The notes: a model not told the origin generated them from the letters alone. 64,000 nt of DNA from Utricularia gibba (GCA_002189035.1 NEEC01000016.1:930001-994000), one strand, 5' to 3'; counted from the first letter of the stretch, positions 33,384 through 49,305 are shown. Numbers and translations: made by a program.

Positions 33384-35184
33384 GGTGAGTGCTTTGGGTG
33401 TTCCCAGAGCTCCATCGGCATCTCTCTATTTATAGAAGGATTTTGCCTTCTGAAGTGCGTCTGAACTAAATTATTGGGGCAAATCGGCCTGTCCGACATA
33501 GCGACTACGTGGCAATCCATATCCCAACGGGGTCTTCATCACTGTTTACAGAACCGGTCCCACCTCTCGTCTTAAGTGTGAACATTTGAACTTCTAATCT
33601 CAAGATTTTTAGATCTTATTATCAATATTTTATTGATTGGTTGGTTTGCTAAAATTAAGAATTCAATGTATTTCGCACATATGTGAAATCTGAGTACAAA
33701 AAAAAAAAAAATACAGATCACATTAAAAAAATTAAATCTAATCAATTACTAATATATGCAATTTCTTATATATCTAAATATTTCATTTTCTAATCGTTAT
33801 ATGAGATTGTTTGTTCTAATATGGTTGTGTGTTTGTTTGCTTGGAGGAGCACGAGAAAAATACTTATTTATGCTTCTAAATGCGCATATGTTAAGAAATA
33901 TACCATTAATAATTTTATACGATTTATAAAAAATAATTAATTAAATAATTTTAACCATATTAATCAATACTATTTTTTAAATGAATTTTCTCAATCAATC
34001 CACATAACACGTCTGTTGAATATAATATATATGTATATATATGTAAAAGAGATTTATTAGTTATAATTTTAATTATAATCACATTATTAATTTTTATTTA
34101 AATATAAATAATTTAAATACATTATTATTAAAGCTATCTTATCTAACGACACTTATCTTCTATTGACTTTCTTGTACATGATTCTGAGGATCCAGAGTTT
34201 GAAAGCAAAGGTCACCCAAAAACTCTCCGCACCCTTCATAACCATTTCTCCTTTTAAAAATAATCATATTTTTATCATATTTTAACACACAAAAAGTATC
34301 AATATTACTCTTGGTTTACATGTCTTTTGCCCACATTACACGTTTCTCCCACTAGGCCACTATATATCCCATTTTTCAGTGTCCATTAAAAAAAATTCCA
34401 TTTTTTGGTGTGTTTTTTTATTAATATGATATTTTTAGAAAAAAATATATTTTTAATGGATGTTTAGACTAATCTATCTCATTTTGTTAATAAACTACAC
34501 CATAAAATGCATAATTTCCACAATTTTCATCGATGCCCACATTCACGGGATAGTGAGTCAATCTCGTGTAAAAATTTATTTAATACCAAAATTTAATTTT
34601 ATGCAAAAATTATTTCCAGTATCACTAGTATGCAATATTCCGTTGAGAAGATGGGTTATTATTCAAATTTATAAATTAACAATAAATTCTGTCACCATTC
34701 ATAATTTATTTTCTAAGTTTGTATTCTATAAACATGATTTTATGAAATGATTCTGTTGAATTTTTAAAGATTTGAATCCTTAAACGTTATATGATAAAAT
34801 TAAAAATCTAGAATATATAATTATTTTTAAGAAATATTAATTTATTGAATCTGTGTTTTAATTATTAATTAACGTATTAATTAGAAAAATTAAAATATTC
34901 ATTTTTATCTACTTTAAAAATATATTTATATTATAAAATTAAATTATATAAATAAATTAATGTAAAAAAATTACAATGTGTATTTTATTTTATTGAATTT
35001 TATGATATATATACAAAATAATTTCATATTTTTAAACTGATTACAAACCGAGTATTTTCAACGTAATATTAATCATAAATTGAAAATAAAGTACGAATTT
35101 TGCATTAAAATCTAGGGTTTTATTCATTGCTAGTTAAGTCAAAAAGAGTCGTTGTGATGGTGACTCGCACAAAATGTTTGACCA

Positions 35185-35201
35185 CGTCAATTTTTGCGTC
35201 A
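35185..35201 (-). promoter_or_regulatory. as-1/ocs-like element (two TGACG, 12-bp spacing) upstream of GRP copy 1
   Basis: Minus strand reads TGACGCAAAAATTGACG; conserved at 38876-38892 in the duplicate. Confidence 0.55.
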
Positions 35202-36509
35202 AGAATATTTTAATGTTGAATCGAATTACTTGGAAATGACCAGGTTCCGACAATTGAAGAAGGTCTTTTGATCATATCTTCGAGTTGGTCGGTCTTTGCC
35301 ACAAATTCTTCTAATCATTTTTGTATACTATCATTACACTCTTTTTTCTCTGTCGGTACTCAAGTTTTTTTTATCAATATTTTTTTAAAAATAAAAATAT
35401 AGCTATAATTACAAAAACATTTTTTTAAAAAAATCATCTTATACAATTTTTAACTTTTTGTTACCCACTCATACTAAATTAACTTTTTAAAAACATTAAT
35501 TATTTGTACTCAGTATTCATTGATAACTAGTTGATGTTAATTAGTTTTAATGAATTTTAATATAATAAATTTATTTAAAATCTGTTTTACTATAAATCAA
35601 AAATTATCTTTAGATAAATTTCAGGATTTTTTGTTTTATTTATATTTGTGTGTTACATTTTTTATTTAAATAAAATTAATTATCTAATCAAAACTAAAAA
35701 TCAACCACTAATAGATAGTAGAAATATTTTTCAATAATTTTTAATAAATACTATAGTGTTCTTCAAAATAAGTAATTTTCGGTACAATATAACACTAAAT
35801 ATTTTATTAAATCTATACTAGAAAATAAAAGAGATTTATAATTAAAACAACGTTTTGAAACATTTTTAAAGTATATTTTTACCTTTTCAAAAATACTTAG
35901 TAAAAAAATTATGATAAATATAATAATCATTTTGAAACTTAAGAAAAACCAAACAAAAAAGATATAAGACGATCAGAAAAATTATGAAAATCCATAAATA
36001 TAATAAAAAAACACTAAACCCATTCTTTATTTTATCTAATACTAATCGTTCATAGCTAAAATACAATTTTAATACCGCTAACTATATCTAAATTATTCTT
36101 ATTTAAATCCAAATAAATTAAATTTCTTTTATCCTACCCTCCCCACCAAACACAATGCCACTTTGCCGATTCCCGAACAAAATAATTATATCTGATAATT
36201 AGAAAATATTATAATATTTTATTTTGTTCTCAAAATTGAGAGGCAGATGTGACGATAGAAGCACAAGTTAAAGATGATTTCATCACGAAACCCTAATAAT
36301 GCTAAGCACCTAAAATATTAATTAATAATTCCCAACATGTGTGTCTTGAGACAGACATCTGGTAATTAGGTTTTTGTAATAGAAAGTTTACGGGAAAGAT
36401 GGAGAGCAGCCCACACGTGCATTTTATTTTATTCTTACAAACCGCAAGCCTACACACAGGAACATTCTTCGCAGCACAAACCCTTCGTCACTTTGTGATC
36501 CATTTCAGC

Positions 36510-37053
36510 TCATGGCTCCTGCCCGTTGGGAACGTCCTGCCATCCGCCTCTGCGCCACCCGCCGCCTCCGCCATACCCGCGGCCATATCCGCCATACCCG
36601 CGGCCATATCCGCCATACCCGCGGCCATATCCACCATACCCGCCACCGCCACCATACCCGCCGCCATACCCACCGCCATATCCACCGCCATATTGATCGG
36701 TAACCGCCTGGCTCTCATCCTGCCACCCGCCCCACCTTCCGCGGTGCCCGCCATAGCCATGGCCTCCGCCATATCCTCGGTGACCGTACCCGCCGCCATA
36801 CCCACCACCCCATTGATCGGTCTGGACATCGGACTCCTTAACTGCCTCCTCCTTGGCTGGGTCATGCAGCAAAACAGATGATCAACAACAAGAAAAAGGA
36901 AAAAGACCAGGTCGAGAAGAATTCACGAAAGGTTTACTTACTAGCTTGAGCAGGATGGGGGTCCTCGGCGAGCTCCCTAGCCACAGCATGAGACGAGGAG
37001 AGGAGAAGAGAAGCCAGCAAGAGACCAGCTAAGAGAAAGAACTTGGAAGCCAT
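36510..37053 (-). CDS. Secreted glycine-rich protein, copy 2 (two extra YGGYGRG repeats), 2 exons
   Basis: Exon 1 37053-36942, exon 2 36856-36510; nearly identical to copy 1 except for a 42-nt repeat expansion. Confidence 0.92.
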
Positions 37054-38875
37054 GGTGAGTGCTTTGGGTGTTCCCAGAGCTCCATCGGCATCTCTCTATT
37101 TATAGAAGGATTTTGCCTTCTCTGGAAGTGCGGCTGAACTCAATTATTGGGGCAAATCGGCCTGTCAGACACAGCGACTACGTGGCAATCCATATCCCAA
37201 CGGCGTCTTCATCACTGTTTACAGAAGAGGTCCCATCTCTCGTCTTCAAGTCTAAGTGTGAACAGTTGGACTTGTAATCTCAAGATTTTTAGATATTATT
37301 ATCATTATCTTTTTGGCTTGTTGTTTTGTCTAAATTAAAGATTATATAGGTTTGGCCAACACATGAAAAATTCAAGTGCATTAAAAAAAACTTAAATCAT
37401 ATTAAAAAATATTAAACTCAATCGATTATTAATGATTTATAATTTTTTATATAATTAAATGTTCTTTTAATAGTAAGGTATTAATATATTAAGTATAGTA
37501 TAATTCAGTATATATATAATCAATTATATAACATTTAATATACGAGAATAGATATATGAGTATATGAGCGATATACATATAATTAACTCTATTTCAATTT
37601 GTATATATCTATGAGTATGTGGATGGTATAGATGTACAAAGTTAGTATATATATACTAATTAATCAAACAATGATAAATCTTCTATATCCTCTTATCAAA
37701 CAAACCTTAAGTATTTTATTTTCAAATACCGATATGGAATTGTTTATTTTAATAAAATTGTTTGTGTGTTTGTTGGGAGGAGGAGAAGAAAAATACTTAT
37801 TTATGCTTCTAAATGCGCATAAATATACTATTAATAATTTTATACGATTTAAAAATATATATATAATATACATATGTGTAAAATAGATTTATTAATCATA
37901 ATTTTAATTATAACCACATGATTAATTTTATTTAAATATAAATAATTTAAATACATTATTAATTAAACTATCTTATCTAAGGACACTTATCTTCTATTGA
38001 CTTTCTTGTACATGATTTGGAGGGTATGGAGTTAGAAAGCAAAGGTCACTCAAAACTGTCCAGACCCTTCATAAGCATTTTTCCTTTTAAAAATAATCAT
38101 TTTTTTCATCGCACAAAAGAGCCTACCTAACACGTTTCTCCCACTAGGCCACACACTATACATCCCAGTTTTTGGTGACCATTGAAAAAAACAAATCCCA
38201 TTCTTCTGTGTATTTTTTTTAATATGATATTTTTAGAAATAAAATGTTTTTTTATTGATTTTTAGACTCTTTTTTTTTTCCAACAATGCATAATTTTCAC
38301 AATTTTTGTCGGTGCTCGCATATCATGGGATAATGAGTAAATCTCATGTTTAAATTTATTTAATATGAAAATTTTGTTTTCTTTTATTTCAACAAAAACT
38401 ATTTCCAGTATCATTAGCAATAAATTCTATCACCATTCATCATTTAATTTTTTAAATTTGTATTCGGTAAACATAATTTTTTGAAGTGATTCTATTGAAT
38501 TTTTAAAGATTTTAATCTTTAATCATTATATAGTAAAATTAAAATTTTAAATTATATGGTTAACTTTAAAAATTATTGAATTTACGTTTTCATAGAAATT
38601 ATTTCATCTACTTGAAAATATATTTATATTATAAATTAAATTATATAATAAATTAATGTGAAAAAAATTATAATGTATATTTCATTTCATTAAATTTTAT
38701 AACATAATACAAAATAAATTTCATAACTTGAAGTTGAGTATATTCTACATAATACTAATCATACATTCAAAATAAAGTATGAATTTTGCATTAAAATCTA
38801 GGGTTTTATTCATTGCACGTAAAGTCAAAAAGAGTCAACGTGATGGTGACGTGACTCACACAAAATGTTTAACTA

Positions 38876-38892
38876 CGTCAATTTTTGCGTCA
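38876..38892 (-). promoter_or_regulatory. as-1/ocs-like element upstream of GRP copy 2
   Basis: CGTCA at 38876-38880 and 38888-38892 (TGACG twice on the minus strand, 12-bp spacing). Confidence 0.55.
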
Positions 38893-41126
38893 ACAATATT
38901 TTAATATGGAATCTAATTACTTGGAAATGACCAGGTTCCGACAATTGGTCTTTTGATCATATCTTCAAGTTCGTCGGTTTTTGCCACAAATTCTTCTAAT
39001 CATTATTTTATACTCTCGTTACACGCTATTTTTTTCTCTGTCGGTGCTGCATCAAGTTTCCACATTGACTACTGTTGAAATCTACACACACGTGTGGTGG
39101 TTGCCCTTAAGTTTTTTTTATCAATATTTTTTTAAAATCAAAATATAGCTATAATTACAATTTTTTTAAAAAAAAAAATCATCCTATGCAATTTTATAAA
39201 CTGTGTAATGAATTAATTATACACTCATACTAACTTAACTTTTAAAAAGCATTAATTATTAGTACTCGTATTCATTGATACTTAGTTGATGTTAATTAAT
39301 TTTAATATAATAAATTTATTTAAAATCTGTTTTACTATAAATAAAAAATTATCTTAAGATAAATTTACGGATTTAGTTGGTTTATTTAAATTTGTGTGTT
39401 ATATTTTTTTAAATAATATTAATTATCTAATCAAAACTACAAATCAACCACTGATCAGTAGTAAAAATATTTTTTAATGACGTTCTAATAAATACTATAG
39501 TGTTCATAATAAATAATGTTATGTACAATATAATACTACATATTTTATTAAGCATATACTAGAAAATAAAAGCGATTTTTAATTAAATCATAATGTGATA
39601 ATCACTTTTAACCTTACCAATTAATGAACATATCCACCACCCCGGCGTATACGCCTATAAATGACAAATCCAGATGCATCTGGACGGGGATTAGCTAGAC
39701 GGTAAGCATATACAATGAATCTGGACCTACGGCGTGACTTTGGTACTATTTCACTTTTTTTCTGGGATGGAGTTGGACCACGACACTCGCCCATTCAATA
39801 AGTTTAGTTCTCTATTTTTAAAATTATGTAATACATACTTCAATTTAATTTTTTAATAAATAATTTGACTCTAAACTTATAAAATTATATATTTAATCTT
39901 TCATATTATCAAAACTAATCGATTTTAATTTTAACGTTATTATAACGTTGCATCGTTATAAATATTATCCTTTGATGGTGTTACTTCATTGAATTCTAAA
40001 TATTATATGACAAGAACACAATATAACTTAACAATAATATCATTCAATTCATTGAACTCAAGATATGAATTTATTCATTTTTAAAAATTTTGAAAACTAT
40101 TTGAATTTTCTTTACATGATTTTGGTATTTTAAGGTCTTTTTTTATAATTTTAAAATTTGAACGTTAAACTATTTATATTAAAAAATTAAGGTGTTTTTC
40201 TTGTAATTTTTTTTTTCTATGGTTCTTTTTTTTTAATTGTTATTCTAAATATTATTTTTAAAAATCTCAAATTGATTTCACTTAAAAATTACAAATTACA
40301 TTATGTTTATTTTTGTAAGTCCAAAAAATTATATTATTTTTTATTACAACGTGCCCAAATCATGTGGGGACAAATGCGGTAGGAAACGCAAATATATAAG
40401 ATAATGAATATATGGTTCGGTTTTTAATTAGATCTGTGACATCAGATCATCCGGTTTGATATCGCATCTCACCCACCGTCGATTACACCACAAGTCAACA
40501 CCAATCATCTTTATAATACTTATATTTAAAAAAATGAAATTTTATATATTTTCATTCCATCGTGTGACAAATATTATCTTTAAATTGACGTGATCATGAT
40601 GTGTGATCGAATATAACATTATAATTATATTTATTAGTAAATATTTTTATGTTTTTACCTAATTAAATTATATTTATCTTATATAATTATTCAATACATT
40701 GCATGAATAAACTTTAAATTCATATCATTAAATATATTGATGACTGTAATATGAAATAATTGATAATTCATAAATTATATATTATTTAATTATTATGATG
40801 ATGAATATTTATTTTTTGAATTATTTATTAAACTATTTGATTTTAAATAGTTTGGGGTATAAATATTTATAATTCTTTTGATTTTTTTTCAAAGAATGAC
40901 CTTAATCGATAAACAAGGAATCGATTTTAGCATTTTCTTTAATTAAATAATATTAATTATGTGGATTTTATAATTTTATGCGAATTTAAAATTTAAAAGC
41001 AATATTACTATAATGACGTATGCCAATTGCCAGACGAGGGTGAAGCTCGACGTGTGCCAATAAACGAGTTTCCGATGCTCGACGGCCAAAACTCGAGGCT
41101 GTAGCTCGTGTGCGTTGTTCTAAATC

Positions 41127-43092
41127 TCAGGGAAGGAAGGCGGATATGGAGGTAGAGGGAGGCGCCGGAGCCGTGCTGGAGGAGAATCCGGATGATGCTG
41201 CGGAGGGCAGAGTCGGCGTCGGAGGAACTGCAACGTGGCTTACCGGTTTCCATGGCGGGCTCGGGAGCCCGGCGGAATTGCAACCTTCAAAGCTGGGCTT
41301 TGCTGCTAATCTATCCTAAAGTGGAACAAAGATCATGAATCCAAGCAAGGGAAGATGCTATGAAAATGGCGTGTTAATGAGGAAAACAGGCGAATGCACC
41401 TTTGTGTTTGCGGCAGACCGGAGAATATGCCGGGCCACGACTGCGGGTACTCAGTAGACATGAGCGATCTCTGGGCGGGGATGGCTTCGGCCTAAACAAA
41501 CAGTAGTTGCGACTGCGCGTCAATGTTGCATGGGATTTGTAGGGACGAAGCCCAAAGTTGATATCAGAACAGTAGGTTGATGTTCAGATTGATCTCAAAC
41601 TAACAGAGGAAGGAAGTCGCTCCGCCGGAGGTTTAGAGATCTTGAGAGTACCTTATGGCTCTGGCCGTAAGCCATTTCGCCGGACGGAAGAGGACGGCGC
41701 AGAGCTCTTGCGGCACCATTCCCCTGAGAACCATTTGACGGCAGCGAAATTCCAAGACTGAGATCAATGCTGCTGCCGCAGCCTGCACATAAATCAAGAT
41801 GAGATTGACAGAGCAGAGAGAATCAGAAACCACTCTTCAATATCAACCTCCATCTCTCCAAGCAAAACTCAGCTCCCTCGTTTGTTTGCTAGACTCAAAG
41901 CCAGTCACAGGTTCTCTCCAGTTGCATTGGATGGCTGCTTTATCATAACCCCTGCACCGACGATGTCGAATACAGAGATGAAAGAAAATCGGTTTTGAGC
42001 CCGGAAGCAGGAAGCAGCTGCTCACCTATTCCCAAGAACTTGAGCGTTACCAGCTTCCCGGAGATCAGGTTTCTGCAGGGCTGCGATTCTGTGCTTGTTG
42101 CTTCCTCGGGGGAAGCCCGAACTTTGGCGACGAAGAATGTGTACGAACTCTTCTTTGGTGAAGTTGACCATCTGCGGAAACTCCGAAACAGGTTACAGAA
42201 ACAACCCGAAAGAAAACATGGCTGCGTAAACTTGCTCACTTGTTTCATATCCTCCTCATAGTCACTGACGTTGAAATTGATATCAGCATCAACACCACGA
42301 AACTTGACGGCTGCCCGATCATACGCCCTGGAATACGAAAAGGATTCCATCTCAGAAAGAAATCTCACTCTGTTTTCAACAAAAACGTGTTACCTAGCAG
42401 CTGCGTGAGCGGTATCGAATCCTCCTGAAAAAAGAAGGGATCAAGCGCTGAATCAAACAGTTTTTTTTTAAACAGATGGAATTAAAGCAGAGGAGATGAA
42501 AGGCGTTGTTACCCAGATAAACTTGTTTCCCACAATCCCTGAAATCATGCACAAAGTACAGGTTTAATTTAAGAAGAAACGCGCATGCAACATAACAGAG
42601 AAATCAAAACGAAAAAAACGAACCAGATGTGGGATTCCCATCTTCCAGTTCGCCTGTAAAACGTAACGCCGCGATACTGAGAACTCCGGGAACGGGGCCC
42701 GCGTCTGCTCTTCTTAGGCTGCGGCGGATTGTCAACCGGCAATTTGGTTTTGTAAAGTCCTAATTGGACGCCTCTGGCGGCTTCCGGCGAAGACAAATCC
42801 AACCGATAATTGGTTCTAAACCCCGGAACCGCAGAGGGAGAAGTGGGGAAGAGCTGGAGCTCGTTCACGTTATCCCTGCTTCATCGTCAATGTGAACCGT
42901 TCCATTTTTCCCGAAATTCGAAGAGAAATTCAGAGTGACAAGGGAGCTGCTGCTGCAGTTGCAGTTCACTTCATCTTTCCCAACATTGTTGGATGTAGTC
43001 GTCGACACCACGGAACCGGCGGTGGGGGTGCTCTCTGGGTCATCGTCGGATGCGAAACCGACTTCAAACGCGTCCATATTCAGATCCAACAT
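41127..43092 (-). CDS. euAP2 transcription factor, RAP2-7/TOE/SMZ type (one intact and one degenerate AP2 domain); apparent -1 frameshift at ~42874
   Basis: MLDLN start at 43092; [31 protein letters not shown]|DCGKQVYLG|[10 protein letters not shown]|[11 protein letters not shown]; linker [11 protein letters not shown]; DLSLGIS EAR-like motif; AASSGFS miR172 region; stop at 41127-41129. Confidence 0.9.
41183..41203 (-). promoter_or_regulatory. miR172 target site (variant)
   Basis: CCGCAGCATCATCCGGATTCT in the last exon, against the usual CTGCAGCATCATCAGGATTCT. Confidence 0.9.
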
Positions 43093-46366: not shown

Positions 46367-49305
46367 CTAGTCACTGACCTTTTCGTGCGTGAAGGCTGTG
46401 GGAGGAGAGGAACTGTAGCTAGCTTGCTCTAGAAAATGATTCATGCTCTCTTGAGCAAATTCTCTCAGATTGTTGAGCTCGGGAAGAACTGTCTTCCCAA
46501 GATCAGGCCTATCTTTTCTCCTTAACTCTGCACATTGGAGTCCTAGTTTGGCCATGGCGAGTGCTTCCTCCAAGGGCCAGTCATGGACATAAGAATCCAG
46601 TACTTCAGAGATTGCGCCCTTGTCCACTGCTCGACTGACGATGTGGGACAACCCCATCGCGGGTTTTCCTGTCAGGATTTGTAGTAGCACAATACCAAAT
46701 GAATACACATCGGATTTCACACCAAGCATCCCTGTTTGTTGATACTCAGGGTCTATGTAGCAAAACGTTCCTGCTGTTGAAGTTAGCCGTAGCTGTGTCA
46801 CATCATCAGCTATGGAGGGAGGAACAAGCCTGGCCAAACCAACATCACTGATTTTGCTGACGTAATTTTGGTCCAGAAGAATGTTTCCGGGTTTTAGATC
46901 ACGGTGGACTAAAGGCTCTGGCTTTGTTTGATGCAGGAACTGCAATCCGGTTGCAATCTCTGCAGCGATTCGAAACCGCACTTGCCAAGAGAGTGGCCGG
47001 GTGTTCCCTTTCCTGAAGAGACGATCTTCAAGGCTCCCATTTGCCATGTACTCATAGACAAGACAACCATATTCTGGGCATGCTCCAAGAAGGAGAACCA
47101 GGTTCGGGTGTCTCAAACAACTCAAAACCTCAACCTGTTAGAGATTTGTTTTTGTAGCCAATTGAGAAACATCTATCATTGCAATGAATGCATGACATAA
47201 CTGTATATATACCCAAAGCTTACTTCTTGATTGAATTGTGCTTTCCCTTGAGCAGCATCAGGACGCAAAACTTTTATTGCAACAGGGGTATGATCGAGGT
47301 GACTCTTATATACAGGACCATAGCCACCACCTCCAATTTTCAGGGATTCAGAGAAGTATTTTGTTGCCTCTTCGATTTCTTCAATGCTATACCGCCTGTA
47401 TCTCAATTTCAAAACATGCTCTGTTTCACTTGACTCTGAATGAGTTTTCATTTCAATGGCTAAACGTCTCCGGGCTTCGATTTCAGCAACTCTTCTTGCT
47501 GCTTCAGCGTCCTCCAATGCTGCTTTATACTTTGCTCTCTCTTGCTCAGCACTCAGTCTGGCTGCTTCCTCTGCGAATCGAGCAGCTTCCAGCCTTTTTT
47601 CTTCTTCCGTTCTCCAGCGATTAAGTTCAACAGCCTATGCTTTCAGAGAAAGTGTTATCTGCTAGAGAGATGAAATTCTGAACTACATGGACTTTGTGAT
47701 TCCACTCACCTTTTGTTTTGCAGTCAATGCCTCCCTGCAAGCTGTGCTGTACATTTCCATAGTTTTCTGCAACTCAGCTTTCAATCTTCTCATTTCAGTT
47801 TCTGCATCATCCTTCATTTATTCCAAAACAATACCAGGCGTTAGCAAATCATAGTAAAGTCTTACTATCTGTGTTCACAAGACAAGGCATTTACACTTTC
47901 AAGCGATGATGTCGAAAAATCAGTTATGAAACTTTGTTCACTCCCTTTAGTCCCCGATCCATAGCTACTTGCGGAGCTAGTTGAAATTCTTGAGTTTCTC
48001 CATGAATCAGGCGCATCAAACAGAACACCCGAGACTGGATCAATAGGCATATCTGTGCTTGGTCTACTGGAGCTCACAAATGATATATCACTCTCTGTTT
48101 CCATCGAATCAGCAAGCATGGTCGGATCATAACCTCTTTCCTTGGTTAAAGGTGATCTGTTTGAAGAATTATTCACATCTCCATCAACATCCCTCTCATG
48201 GCATTCAACAAGAAAAGCAATTTTAGCAGGAAAACTTACCTGAATAAATCAAAATCCTCCATAACATTAGTCTTCCGGTGTGTCCTGTCTGTTGTAGTTC
48301 AAATGAGATTACTTATCACATGAGCAATCCAGGAGGTTCTATTGCAAGCTAAGGGATTATTCTACTACATCTCAGGAAAAGGTGCAATGCTAGAACAGCA
48401 TAAGAAGGATTCAAACAAACCTCTGGCATGGGACATGTGCCGGGGGAATGGACCAGGGGAGCTAGGCACACTGGTACCATTACGCTTCTGCAGTTGCTGT
48501 ATTTGAGGAAGGAGGGGAGATGTAAATGGGGCCATTCGAGATGCATTTCGAACCGATGATATCTTTGACTTAGAGATCGTATAAACTGTGCAGAAATCAG
48601 GGGAGGCTTTTGAAACACTACTAGGGATATCCATGGCTTTCAGTCTTCTGCAATATCAGAAACAAGGAATTGTGTTAAACTCTTGTAGCAATTGCTGCAG
48701 CTACATCAATGAATCATTCGAAGAAAAGGGGTGTTTACTTGAGAAAGCCACGGTGGGATGCACCCAAGACCAAGTTCTCAATTGCAGCATGAGCAACATA
48801 CTCTACAATCATCTTTGGAATATCTGGGTCCTCTAGAACAACATCAAAGCATTGTATCTGTGAAACAATCATCAAAACTGTGAATTCAAAAATGAATCAT
48901 CAACATACCCATTCCCTGAAAAACAAATCATTCAAAAAGCACCCACATCTTTTCGAGTGCAGAAGCAATGAAAGGTGAGGAACAGCTCTCGGACATGACT
49001 TTCAAGCAATTGAAGGTCAGCTGATCCAGAACCGATCAATCCATTTGAATTATATTTGTCTACAGATGAAAGCGAGAAGAATGAGCAACAACCCATCCCA
49101 GAAAAAAAGACAAAATCTGGAATTTACGCGAGGAGTTCGCAATGCAGTGAATGAGAATCACGGTTTGGCCTTTGGAAAGGAGATTATCGACAGTCCATTT
49201 GATCGCATGTTGGCTTCCTTTATCTTTGTCGATTGCCACAGCAACCAAAGCATTTCGACCTCCAGCTTTTCCACCATTCCCACTTTTGGGGCTCGAACTC
49301 CACAT
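46367..49305 (-). CDS. USP-domain (adenine nucleotide alpha hydrolase-like) receptor-like cytoplasmic kinase, PUB/RLCK-IXb-related; no C-terminal U-box seen
   Basis: VAVAIDKDKGSQHAIKWTVDNLL USP N-terminus; coiled-coil; kinase motifs KIGGGGYGPVYK, VAIK, HRDLKPGNILLD, SDVGLARL, GTFCYIDPEY. The last codons may be spliced at 46378 to a short RNST* exon ending at ~46303. Confidence 0.92.

Follow-up and report, generated by a model that had tools for sequence, protein, structure and literature searches.

The miR172 sites of euAP2 genes are among the most conserved microRNA targets of plants and, to our knowledge, nearly all variants that escape miR172 originated in crops, either induced or favored by human selection. 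A wild reference genome in which such a site carries a change of the type found in the barley allele cly1.c would constitute a natural experiment on how far the miR172 pairing of a TOE-type repressor can be eroded, and would offer a simple way to test what seed-end mismatches (position 8) do in plant miRNA targeting. It would also bear on how retained gene copies diverge in regulation after repeated rounds of genome duplication, as in Utricularia gibba; if the copy were a pseudogene, or the base an error, it would have no further significance. Such a change lies in the window analyzed here, a 64-kb stretch of U. gibba DNA. The locus thus raises the question of whether a floral-repressor-type gene has partly escaped miR172 or is matched by a variant miR172, the two possibilities put forward in a sequence-only reading of the window.

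Six-frame reading and inspection of the raw sequence showed that the site, CCGCAGCATCATCCGGATTCT, belongs to the final exon of a minus-strand euAP2 gene (43092..41127). The site departs from the canonical target, CTGCAGCATCATCAGGATTCT, at two nucleotides, nt 2 (T>C, at 41202) and nt 14 (A>C), and each change is silent and falls on a third codon position: the codons TCC GCA GCA TCA TCC GGA TTC across the site encode S-A-A-S-S-G-F, in a frame that runs on to a TGA stop downstream. The nt-14 change, a plus-strand G at 41190 in the Ser codon TCC at 41192-41190, is real in this U. gibba assembly. When paired with AGAAUCUUGAUGAUGCUGCAU, the site forms G:U at miRNA position 7, C:U at position 8, C:A at position 20, and C:U at position 21. 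On re-reading, every detail that the sequence-only reading had given was correct, from the site sequence and the plus-strand G to the pairing at positions 7, 8, and 20, and the change from TCA to TCC is synonymous, as it had claimed. Within the 64-kb window, 41203..41183 was the sole match to CTGCAGCATCATCAGGATTCT with three or fewer mismatches, and shuffled sequences produced no such match (0/100). In an alignment with four orthologues and paralogues, the 21-nt site formed a conserved island amid variable flanks. A miR172-like sequence was also sought across the 64-kb window and none was found, and a metagenome scan with the flanked site, nt 14 being set to N, returned 0 matches.

The gene model follows a ten-exon numbering that uses the labels 1-5 and 7-10 (nine exons located; Table 1); label 6 was skipped because the mini-exon that forms exon 6 in the relatives is missing in the U. 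gibba gene. The spliced model was joined from the coordinates, with N/X at a break in exon 1, and databases were searched with single exons. The donor of exon 7 was picked by homology to RDGGSGSSLDLNLGIS of the relatives. The resulting model is 423 residues long and has an MLDLN start, the ELQLFP motif, a textbook first AP2 domain (R1), a conserved 18-residue linker, IDLSLGIS, and AASSGF near the C-terminus. The introns (nine by the count given) are very short and all have GT-AG borders, and the exons, apart from the break in exon 1, are open and collinear with those of the relatives.

Table 1. Positions of the exons, the miR172 site, and other features of the U. gibba euAP2 gene within the 64-kb window
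Feature	Position	Strand	Description
Exon 1	42624..43092	minus	ATG at 43092; MLDLN N-terminus, ELQLFP, 12-residue stretch, start of first AP2 domain
Apparent one-base frameshift	42868..42881	minus	In exon 1
Exon 2	42513..42538	minus	26 nt; DCGKQVYL, first AP2 domain; AG/GT borders, in frame
Exon 3	42394..42424	minus	31 nt; GFDTAHAAA, first AP2 domain
Exon 4	42240..42327	minus	Ends ...DMKQ; end of first AP2 domain
Exon 5	42026..42171	minus	Conserved linker and degenerate start of second AP2 domain; without Pfam AP2 match
Intron with weak mini-exon remnant	41952..42025	minus	74 nt; out-of-frame deletions, fused to next acceptor
Exon 7	41848..41951	minus	Ends ...WRDGG; degenerate end of second AP2 domain
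Exon 8	41652..41782	minus	IDLSLGIS (EAR-type) motif
Exon 9	41400..41491	minus	Homologous to SKYSPMWAGLYSGFAPNNKE of relatives
Exon 10 (last)	41127..41310	minus	miR172 site; stop TGA 41129-41127
miR172 target site CCGCAGCATCATCCGGATTCT	41183..41203	minus	Encodes (S)AASSGF

The floral-repressor type that had been proposed for this euAP2 gene was borne out by the protein comparisons, which support its assignment as a TOE1/RAP2.7-type member of the family. The nearest proteins, annotated as RAP2-7-like or APETALA2-like protein 3, were all from Lamiales, with Ipomoea further out; their sources were Sesamum indicum, S. calycinum, Andrographis paniculata, Henckelia pumila, Erythranthe guttata, and Ipomoea. 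In a maximum-likelihood tree of 13 rows picked from the best matches of a protein search, the U. gibba model grouped with Sesamum KAL2227796 and Andrographis XP_051120106 (support 93/91), within a clade of RAP2-7-like proteins. Its branch (0.9) was the longest in the tree, the remaining Lamiales sequences having values of 0.15-0.55. Synteny was uninformative: the GST gene found next to the orthologues in Sesamum, Andrographis, and Henckelia had no match in the 64-kb window, and neither had the RING/RRM gene that neighbors the paralogue in Sesamum calycinum.

The two AP2 domains of the model have had different fates. R1 is of the euAP2 type, and its 58-residue sequence is identical or near-identical to those of the relatives; the division of the domain among four exons explains the weak Pfam AP2 match to the exon-1 piece alone. 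Across the approximately 80 codons of the R1 region, 38-46 codons differ from each relative, with only 3-9 amino-acid differences. dN was 0.02-0.07, dS was saturated, and dN/dS was well below 0.1, indicating strong purifying selection on R1 and purifying selection on the gene for most of its history. The second AP2 domain (R2) is not intact: HRIA stands in place of YRGV and PDLREAG in place of CGRWEAR, and the 15-residue mini-exon is absent, having been eroded. In relatives with an intact R2, the mini-exon is followed by AYDKAAIKCNGxEAxTNFE, and no Pfam AP2 match was obtained for U. gibba exons 5 and 7. The mini-exon (45 nt, YxYLGLFDSEVEAAR) is used alternatively in relatives, for example in Henckelia X1 vs X2. 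Its remnant in U. gibba gave a local alignment score of 28 against Henckelia, compared with a shuffle mean of 18.7, and this is weak evidence, with 8 of 500 shuffles reaching 28. The loss of the YVYLGLFD mini-exon was considered as proof of a pseudogene and rejected, since annotated isoforms of the relatives omit the mini-exon. Partial decay of R2 also occurs in both Andrographis copies and in Erythranthe, in apparently intact genes, and points to a trend within the clade instead of proving the gene dead.

In the assembly, the reading frame of exon 1 is broken, and full translation of the gene may fail. The frame that opens at the ATG ends at TGA 42867-42865, and the frame that continues the protein is closed upstream by TGA 42883-42881, so that the frame switches within 13 nt by one missing base or two extra bases; the likeliest spot of a missing base is the GGG run at 42876-42874. 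In the relatives, exon 1 is single and uninterrupted, and both U. gibba halves align collinearly to it. An intron in place of the frameshift was rejected because only 13 nt are available for the switch and homology to the relatives extends in both frames right up to it. The frameshift could be an assembly error or a sign of early decay. An exact look-up of the 75-residue exon-1 ORF gave no match, and a word search with the exon-1 reading frame found no self-match, the best match being 63-66% identical. Elsewhere in the coding sequence, there were no other stops or shifts. The exon-1 frameshift and the degenerate R2 were both absent from the sequence-only reading.

The miR172 site itself was compared in the DNA of seven relatives and one U. 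gibba assembly. The canonical CTGCAGCATCATCAGGATTCT is found in Sesamum indicum, both Henckelia copies, and the second Andrographis copy. The Andrographis orthologue has CCGCAGCATCATCAGGATTCT, with C at nt 2 as in U. gibba; Ipomoea triloba has CTGCGGCATCATCAGGATTCT, which forms G:U with miRNA position 17; and Sesamum calycinum has CTGCAGCATCATCAAGATTCT, in which the G:U at position 7 becomes A:U at the cost of a Gly>Arg replacement. Site variation among the relatives is thus confined to nt 2, nt 5 (giving a G:U pair), and nt 15 (giving better pairing); apart from nt 14, natural variation in the site preserves or improves pairing or faces the miRNA tail. At nt 14, all seven relatives have A (codon TCA), and C occurs, among the sequences compared, only in the U. 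gibba gene, so the C is derived. The invariance of nt 14 in the seven relatives, although a change there is silent, argues for selection at the RNA level. The GC content at third codon positions (GC3) in the C-terminal region was 0.62 in the U. gibba gene and 0.33-0.48 in the relatives, and both T>C and A>C therefore follow a local GC-ward silent drift. The mismatch at position 20 recurs in the Andrographis orthologue and falls within the 3' tail of the miRNA, where mismatches are tolerated; this had previously been overlooked.

Because R2 is degenerate and exon 1 is apparently frameshifted, the site change could reflect relaxed constraint or decay and not regulatory escape. If the frame break between 42881 and 42868 were real, the gene would be a young or incipient pseudogene and the site change neutral erosion, and the heavy degeneration of R2 with its eroded mini-exon, the longest branch of the tree, and the presence of two changes in the miR172 site would all suit such a copy. 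However, the break is the sole lesion and adjoins a GGG run in a long-read assembly, and the other exons remain open to the homologous stop. A pseudogene is recognized by several lesions, lost splice sites, and neutral substitution, and what we found instead were GT-AG borders at all introns and a dN/dS in R1 far below 1. Furthermore, the site changes are silent and retain the AASSGF peptide, and degenerate second domains are present in the apparently intact Andrographis and Erythranthe genes. We therefore regard decay as an unlikely explanation of the site. A wrong base call at nt 14 might also be suspected, given that a single assembly was available and that the same gene contains a suspect one-base indel. 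In polished long-read assemblies, however, residual errors are mostly homopolymer indels and rarely substitutions. The base at nt 14 lies outside a homopolymer run and the change agrees with the regional GC3 trend, which makes an error at this position extremely unlikely.

The effect of the change depends on the miR172 species with which the site is paired. A 2021 small-RNA survey (PMC8333044, Table S2) reported two U. gibba miR172 loci, unitig_0:3967533-3967612, producing CGAAUCUUGAUGAUGCUGCAU (162 reads), and unitig_736:668718-668807, producing AGAAUCUUGAUGAUGCUGCAU. Three ShortStack major RNAs from unitig_0:4.23-4.29 Mb were absent from the window, and the window is not the interval unitig_0:4.227-4.291 Mb. 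Both expressed species keep U8 and A20, and neither therefore compensates the nt-14 or nt-2 change. Pairing to this target would be restored by a U. gibba isoform with G at position 8, and such a compensated pair was the variant-miR172 alternative of the sequence-only reading. That alternative gained no support: no string of the GGAUGAUGCUGC form (G at position 8) was found among the rows listed in the supplementary tables of PMC8333044, and one published variant differs at position 1 (C) only. With both species of Table S2 against it, compensation by an isoform appears scarcely probable at all. A literature search for U. gibba degradome data found none.

Against canonical miR172, the predicted duplex energy of the U. 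gibba site was -28.9 kcal/mol, compared with -33.7 kcal/mol for the canonical site. When nt 14 alone was reverted, the energy became -32.8 kcal/mol, so that approximately 3.9 of the 4.8 kcal/mol lost is due to nt 14. An Allen-type mismatch score rose from 2.0 for the canonical site to 5.0, and the predicted miRNA-target interaction is thus weakened, as in cly1.c-type variants. The flanks of the U. gibba site have a GC content of 0.63, compared with 0.45-0.51 in the others (eight compared), and its predicted opening energy was 5.4 kcal/mol, compared with 1.9-4.3 kcal/mol, making it the least accessible of the eight. The C:U at position 8 lies at the 3' end of the seed (g2-g8), adjoining the usual G:U at position 7, and g2-g8 seed pairing matters for plant AGO1 binding (PMC11194062).

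These losses might nevertheless be harmless, with miR172 repressing the mRNA about as before by cleavage and/or translational repression. Pairing is complete in the center (positions 9-12) and in the 3' supplementary region (positions 13-16), and 17 of the 21 positions are paired in total, a figure that counts the G:U at position 7. In addition, the ratio of the minimum free energy (MFE) to that of the perfect duplex is 0.84, exceeding the usual cut-off of 0.72. Since miR172 acts by translational repression too, an MFE ratio of this size means that substantial regulation may remain. The dense-spike phenotype of cly1.c (Zeo3) is also much milder than that of Zeo1 (PMC10722097). Against this, the identical single change has a visible phenotype in barley (PMC10722097, PMC8525353), and in U. 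gibba the adjacent G:U, a second mismatch in the tail, and the least accessible context of the eight add to the nt-14 change. The selection at the RNA level suggested by the invariant nt 14 of the relatives also speaks against a change without consequence, and we consider unaltered repression rather improbable.

We see about an even chance that the gene is a functional variant with attenuated miR172 control, and on the sequence evidence it is reasonable to infer a partial escape from miR172. The interpretation first offered for this site stands in its gene type, its silent derived change, its cly1.c position, and its weaker predicted pairing, and finds no support for the matching variant miR172 that it had allowed for. 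In the reading of attenuated control, the gene is the U. gibba orthologue of the Lamiales RAP2.7/TOE1-like euAP2 genes, miR172-controlled repressors of flowering and phase change, and its site has gained two silent third-codon changes to C. Of these, the one at nt 2 lies opposite the 3' tail of the miRNA, which tolerates mismatches, whereas the one at nt 14 creates the C:U at position 8, where the seed ends and the usual G:U adjoins. Because neither published expressed miR172 compensates, weaker binding and less repression of the U. gibba mRNA than of those of the relatives are predicted. With 17 of the 21 positions still paired, repression would be lowered but not abolished. The most likely origin of the change would be GC-biased synonymous drift in a fast-evolving copy with relaxed selection for tight miR172 pairing, the same copy that, as far as its sequence indicates, would lack a working second AP2 domain. 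The site sequence, its derived state, the pairing values, and the lack of a compensating miRNA among those listed come directly from the analysis, whereas we infer both the reduced repression in vivo and the reason for which the change became established. It is also conceivable, but very unlikely, that a TOE1-like repressor with naturally attenuated miR172 control has become fixed in U. gibba; the silent change exploited by barley breeders would then have arisen in a wild plant, in a copy functioning with one AP2 domain, and would help to reshape the miR156/miR172 timing pathway of a species whose body plan is highly unusual.

Among known systems, the Lamiales RAP2.7/TOE1-like genes (KAL2227796, XP_051120106, and Henckelia pumila XP_073144659) are among the closest, sharing with the U. 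gibba gene the exon plan, MLDLN, ELQLFP, a near-identical first AP2 domain, IDL(N/S)LGIS, an NWPWK-type C-terminus, and AASSGF, and forming one clade with it. They differ in having A at nt 14 and, in all three, an adjacent GST gene; their branches are also shorter than that of the U. gibba copy, and their second AP2 domains less degenerate. Arabidopsis SMZ and SNZ are miR172-targeted euAP2 repressors with a diverged second AP2 domain from an independent lineage (Brassicaceae). They resemble the U. gibba gene in the non-canonical second AP2 domain, and their miR172 sites are not known to carry a position-8 mismatch.

In wheat Q and maize Ts6/ids1, point changes in the same 21-nt site lessen miR172 control and cause gain of function. 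These alleles and barley Zeo1 differ from the U. gibba site in that their changes lie at other positions, several are protein-changing, and their phenotypes have been demonstrated. Reduced miR172 control and gain of function have likewise been described for miR172-site mutants of barley and of wheat AP2 homoeologues (PMC10722097). The natural barley alleles cly1.b and cly1.c each have one synonymous SNP, at site nucleotides 8 and 14, respectively, and Zeo3 is cly1.c (PMC10722097); the nt-14 change is A to C (PMC8525353). The sequence-only reading had thus described cly1.c correctly, as an A-to-C change at the 14th nucleotide (PMC10722097, PMC8525353). The energies given for the barley sites are -35.2 kcal/mol for Cly1.a, -32.6 kcal/mol for cly1.c, and about -30.7 kcal/mol for Zeo1 (PMC10722097). 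Like cly1.c of HvAP2/Cly1, the U. gibba gene is a euAP2 gene whose last exon carries the 21-nt site with a silent A>C at nt 14, and by this change it belongs, as a sequence variant, with the known natural miR172-site variants of euAP2 genes. In contrast, cly1.c is a segregating crop allele of an AP2-type paralogue with a proven phenotype (cleistogamy and a denser spike), whereas the U. gibba change stands in the reference sequence of a wild species and in a TOE1-type paralogue, the likeness being exact at the level of the sequence. A rice construct described as mimicking natural barley variants combines T>C at nt 2 with A>C at nt 14 (PMC8525353), exactly the two substitutions by which the U. 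gibba site differs from the canonical target.

The second AP2 domain of the Utricularia gibba euAP2 gene, a TOE1/RAP2.7-type gene, was strongly degenerate, with HRIA in place of YRGV and DLREAG in place of GRWEAR. Furthermore, only a weak, out-of-frame remnant was left of a 45-nt mini-exon that is alternatively used in relatives. Degeneration of this domain was milder in the Andrographis and Erythranthe relatives than in U. gibba, and judging from these graded sequences, repeated loss of the second AP2 domain seems to be under way in the Lamiales RAP2.7-like clade.

Whereas exon 1 is single and continuous in relatives, that of the U. gibba gene was out of frame by one base. This break represents either an indel of the long-read assembly or a young disabling mutation.

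Features of the euAP2 gene, its surroundings, and a relative
Feature	Location	Strand
One-base frame break in euAP2 exon 1, beside a GGG run	window 42868-42881	minus
Strongly degenerate second AP2 domain of the euAP2 gene	window 41848-42171	minus
Mini-exon remnant inside a 74-nt intron	window 42025-41952	minus
252-codon open frame with protein-kinase motifs	window 46367-47125	minus
miR172 site of Sesamum calycinum	L004:5089-5109	

The open frame with kinase motifs, located upstream of the euAP2 gene at a distance of approximately 3 kb, contained HRDLKPGNILL and a DFG-like SDVGLA. The 3' end of the euAP2 coding sequence was GC-rich, whereas the DNA downstream of the gene included stretches of very high AT content (window 34000-40000; GC 0.21-0.25 in 2-kb windows).

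One of the two expressed miR172 species of U. gibba starts with a 5' C rather than A (CGAAUCUUGAUGAUGCUGCAU), and its locus (unitig_0:3967533-3967612) lies outside the window (PMC8333044 Table S2). This 5' C could alter the choice of the loading Argonaute.

Among the relatives, AASSRF or ATSSRF replaced the site-encoded AASSGF in S. calycinum (P0128) and Erythranthe guttata (P0135; protein level). At nt 15 of the S. calycinum site, a G-to-A change gave a perfect A:U pair with miRNA position 7, where a G:U is otherwise universal; miR172 pairing is thus better, at the price of an amino-acid change. With respect to miR172 pairing, this change and that in the U. gibba site point in opposite directions.
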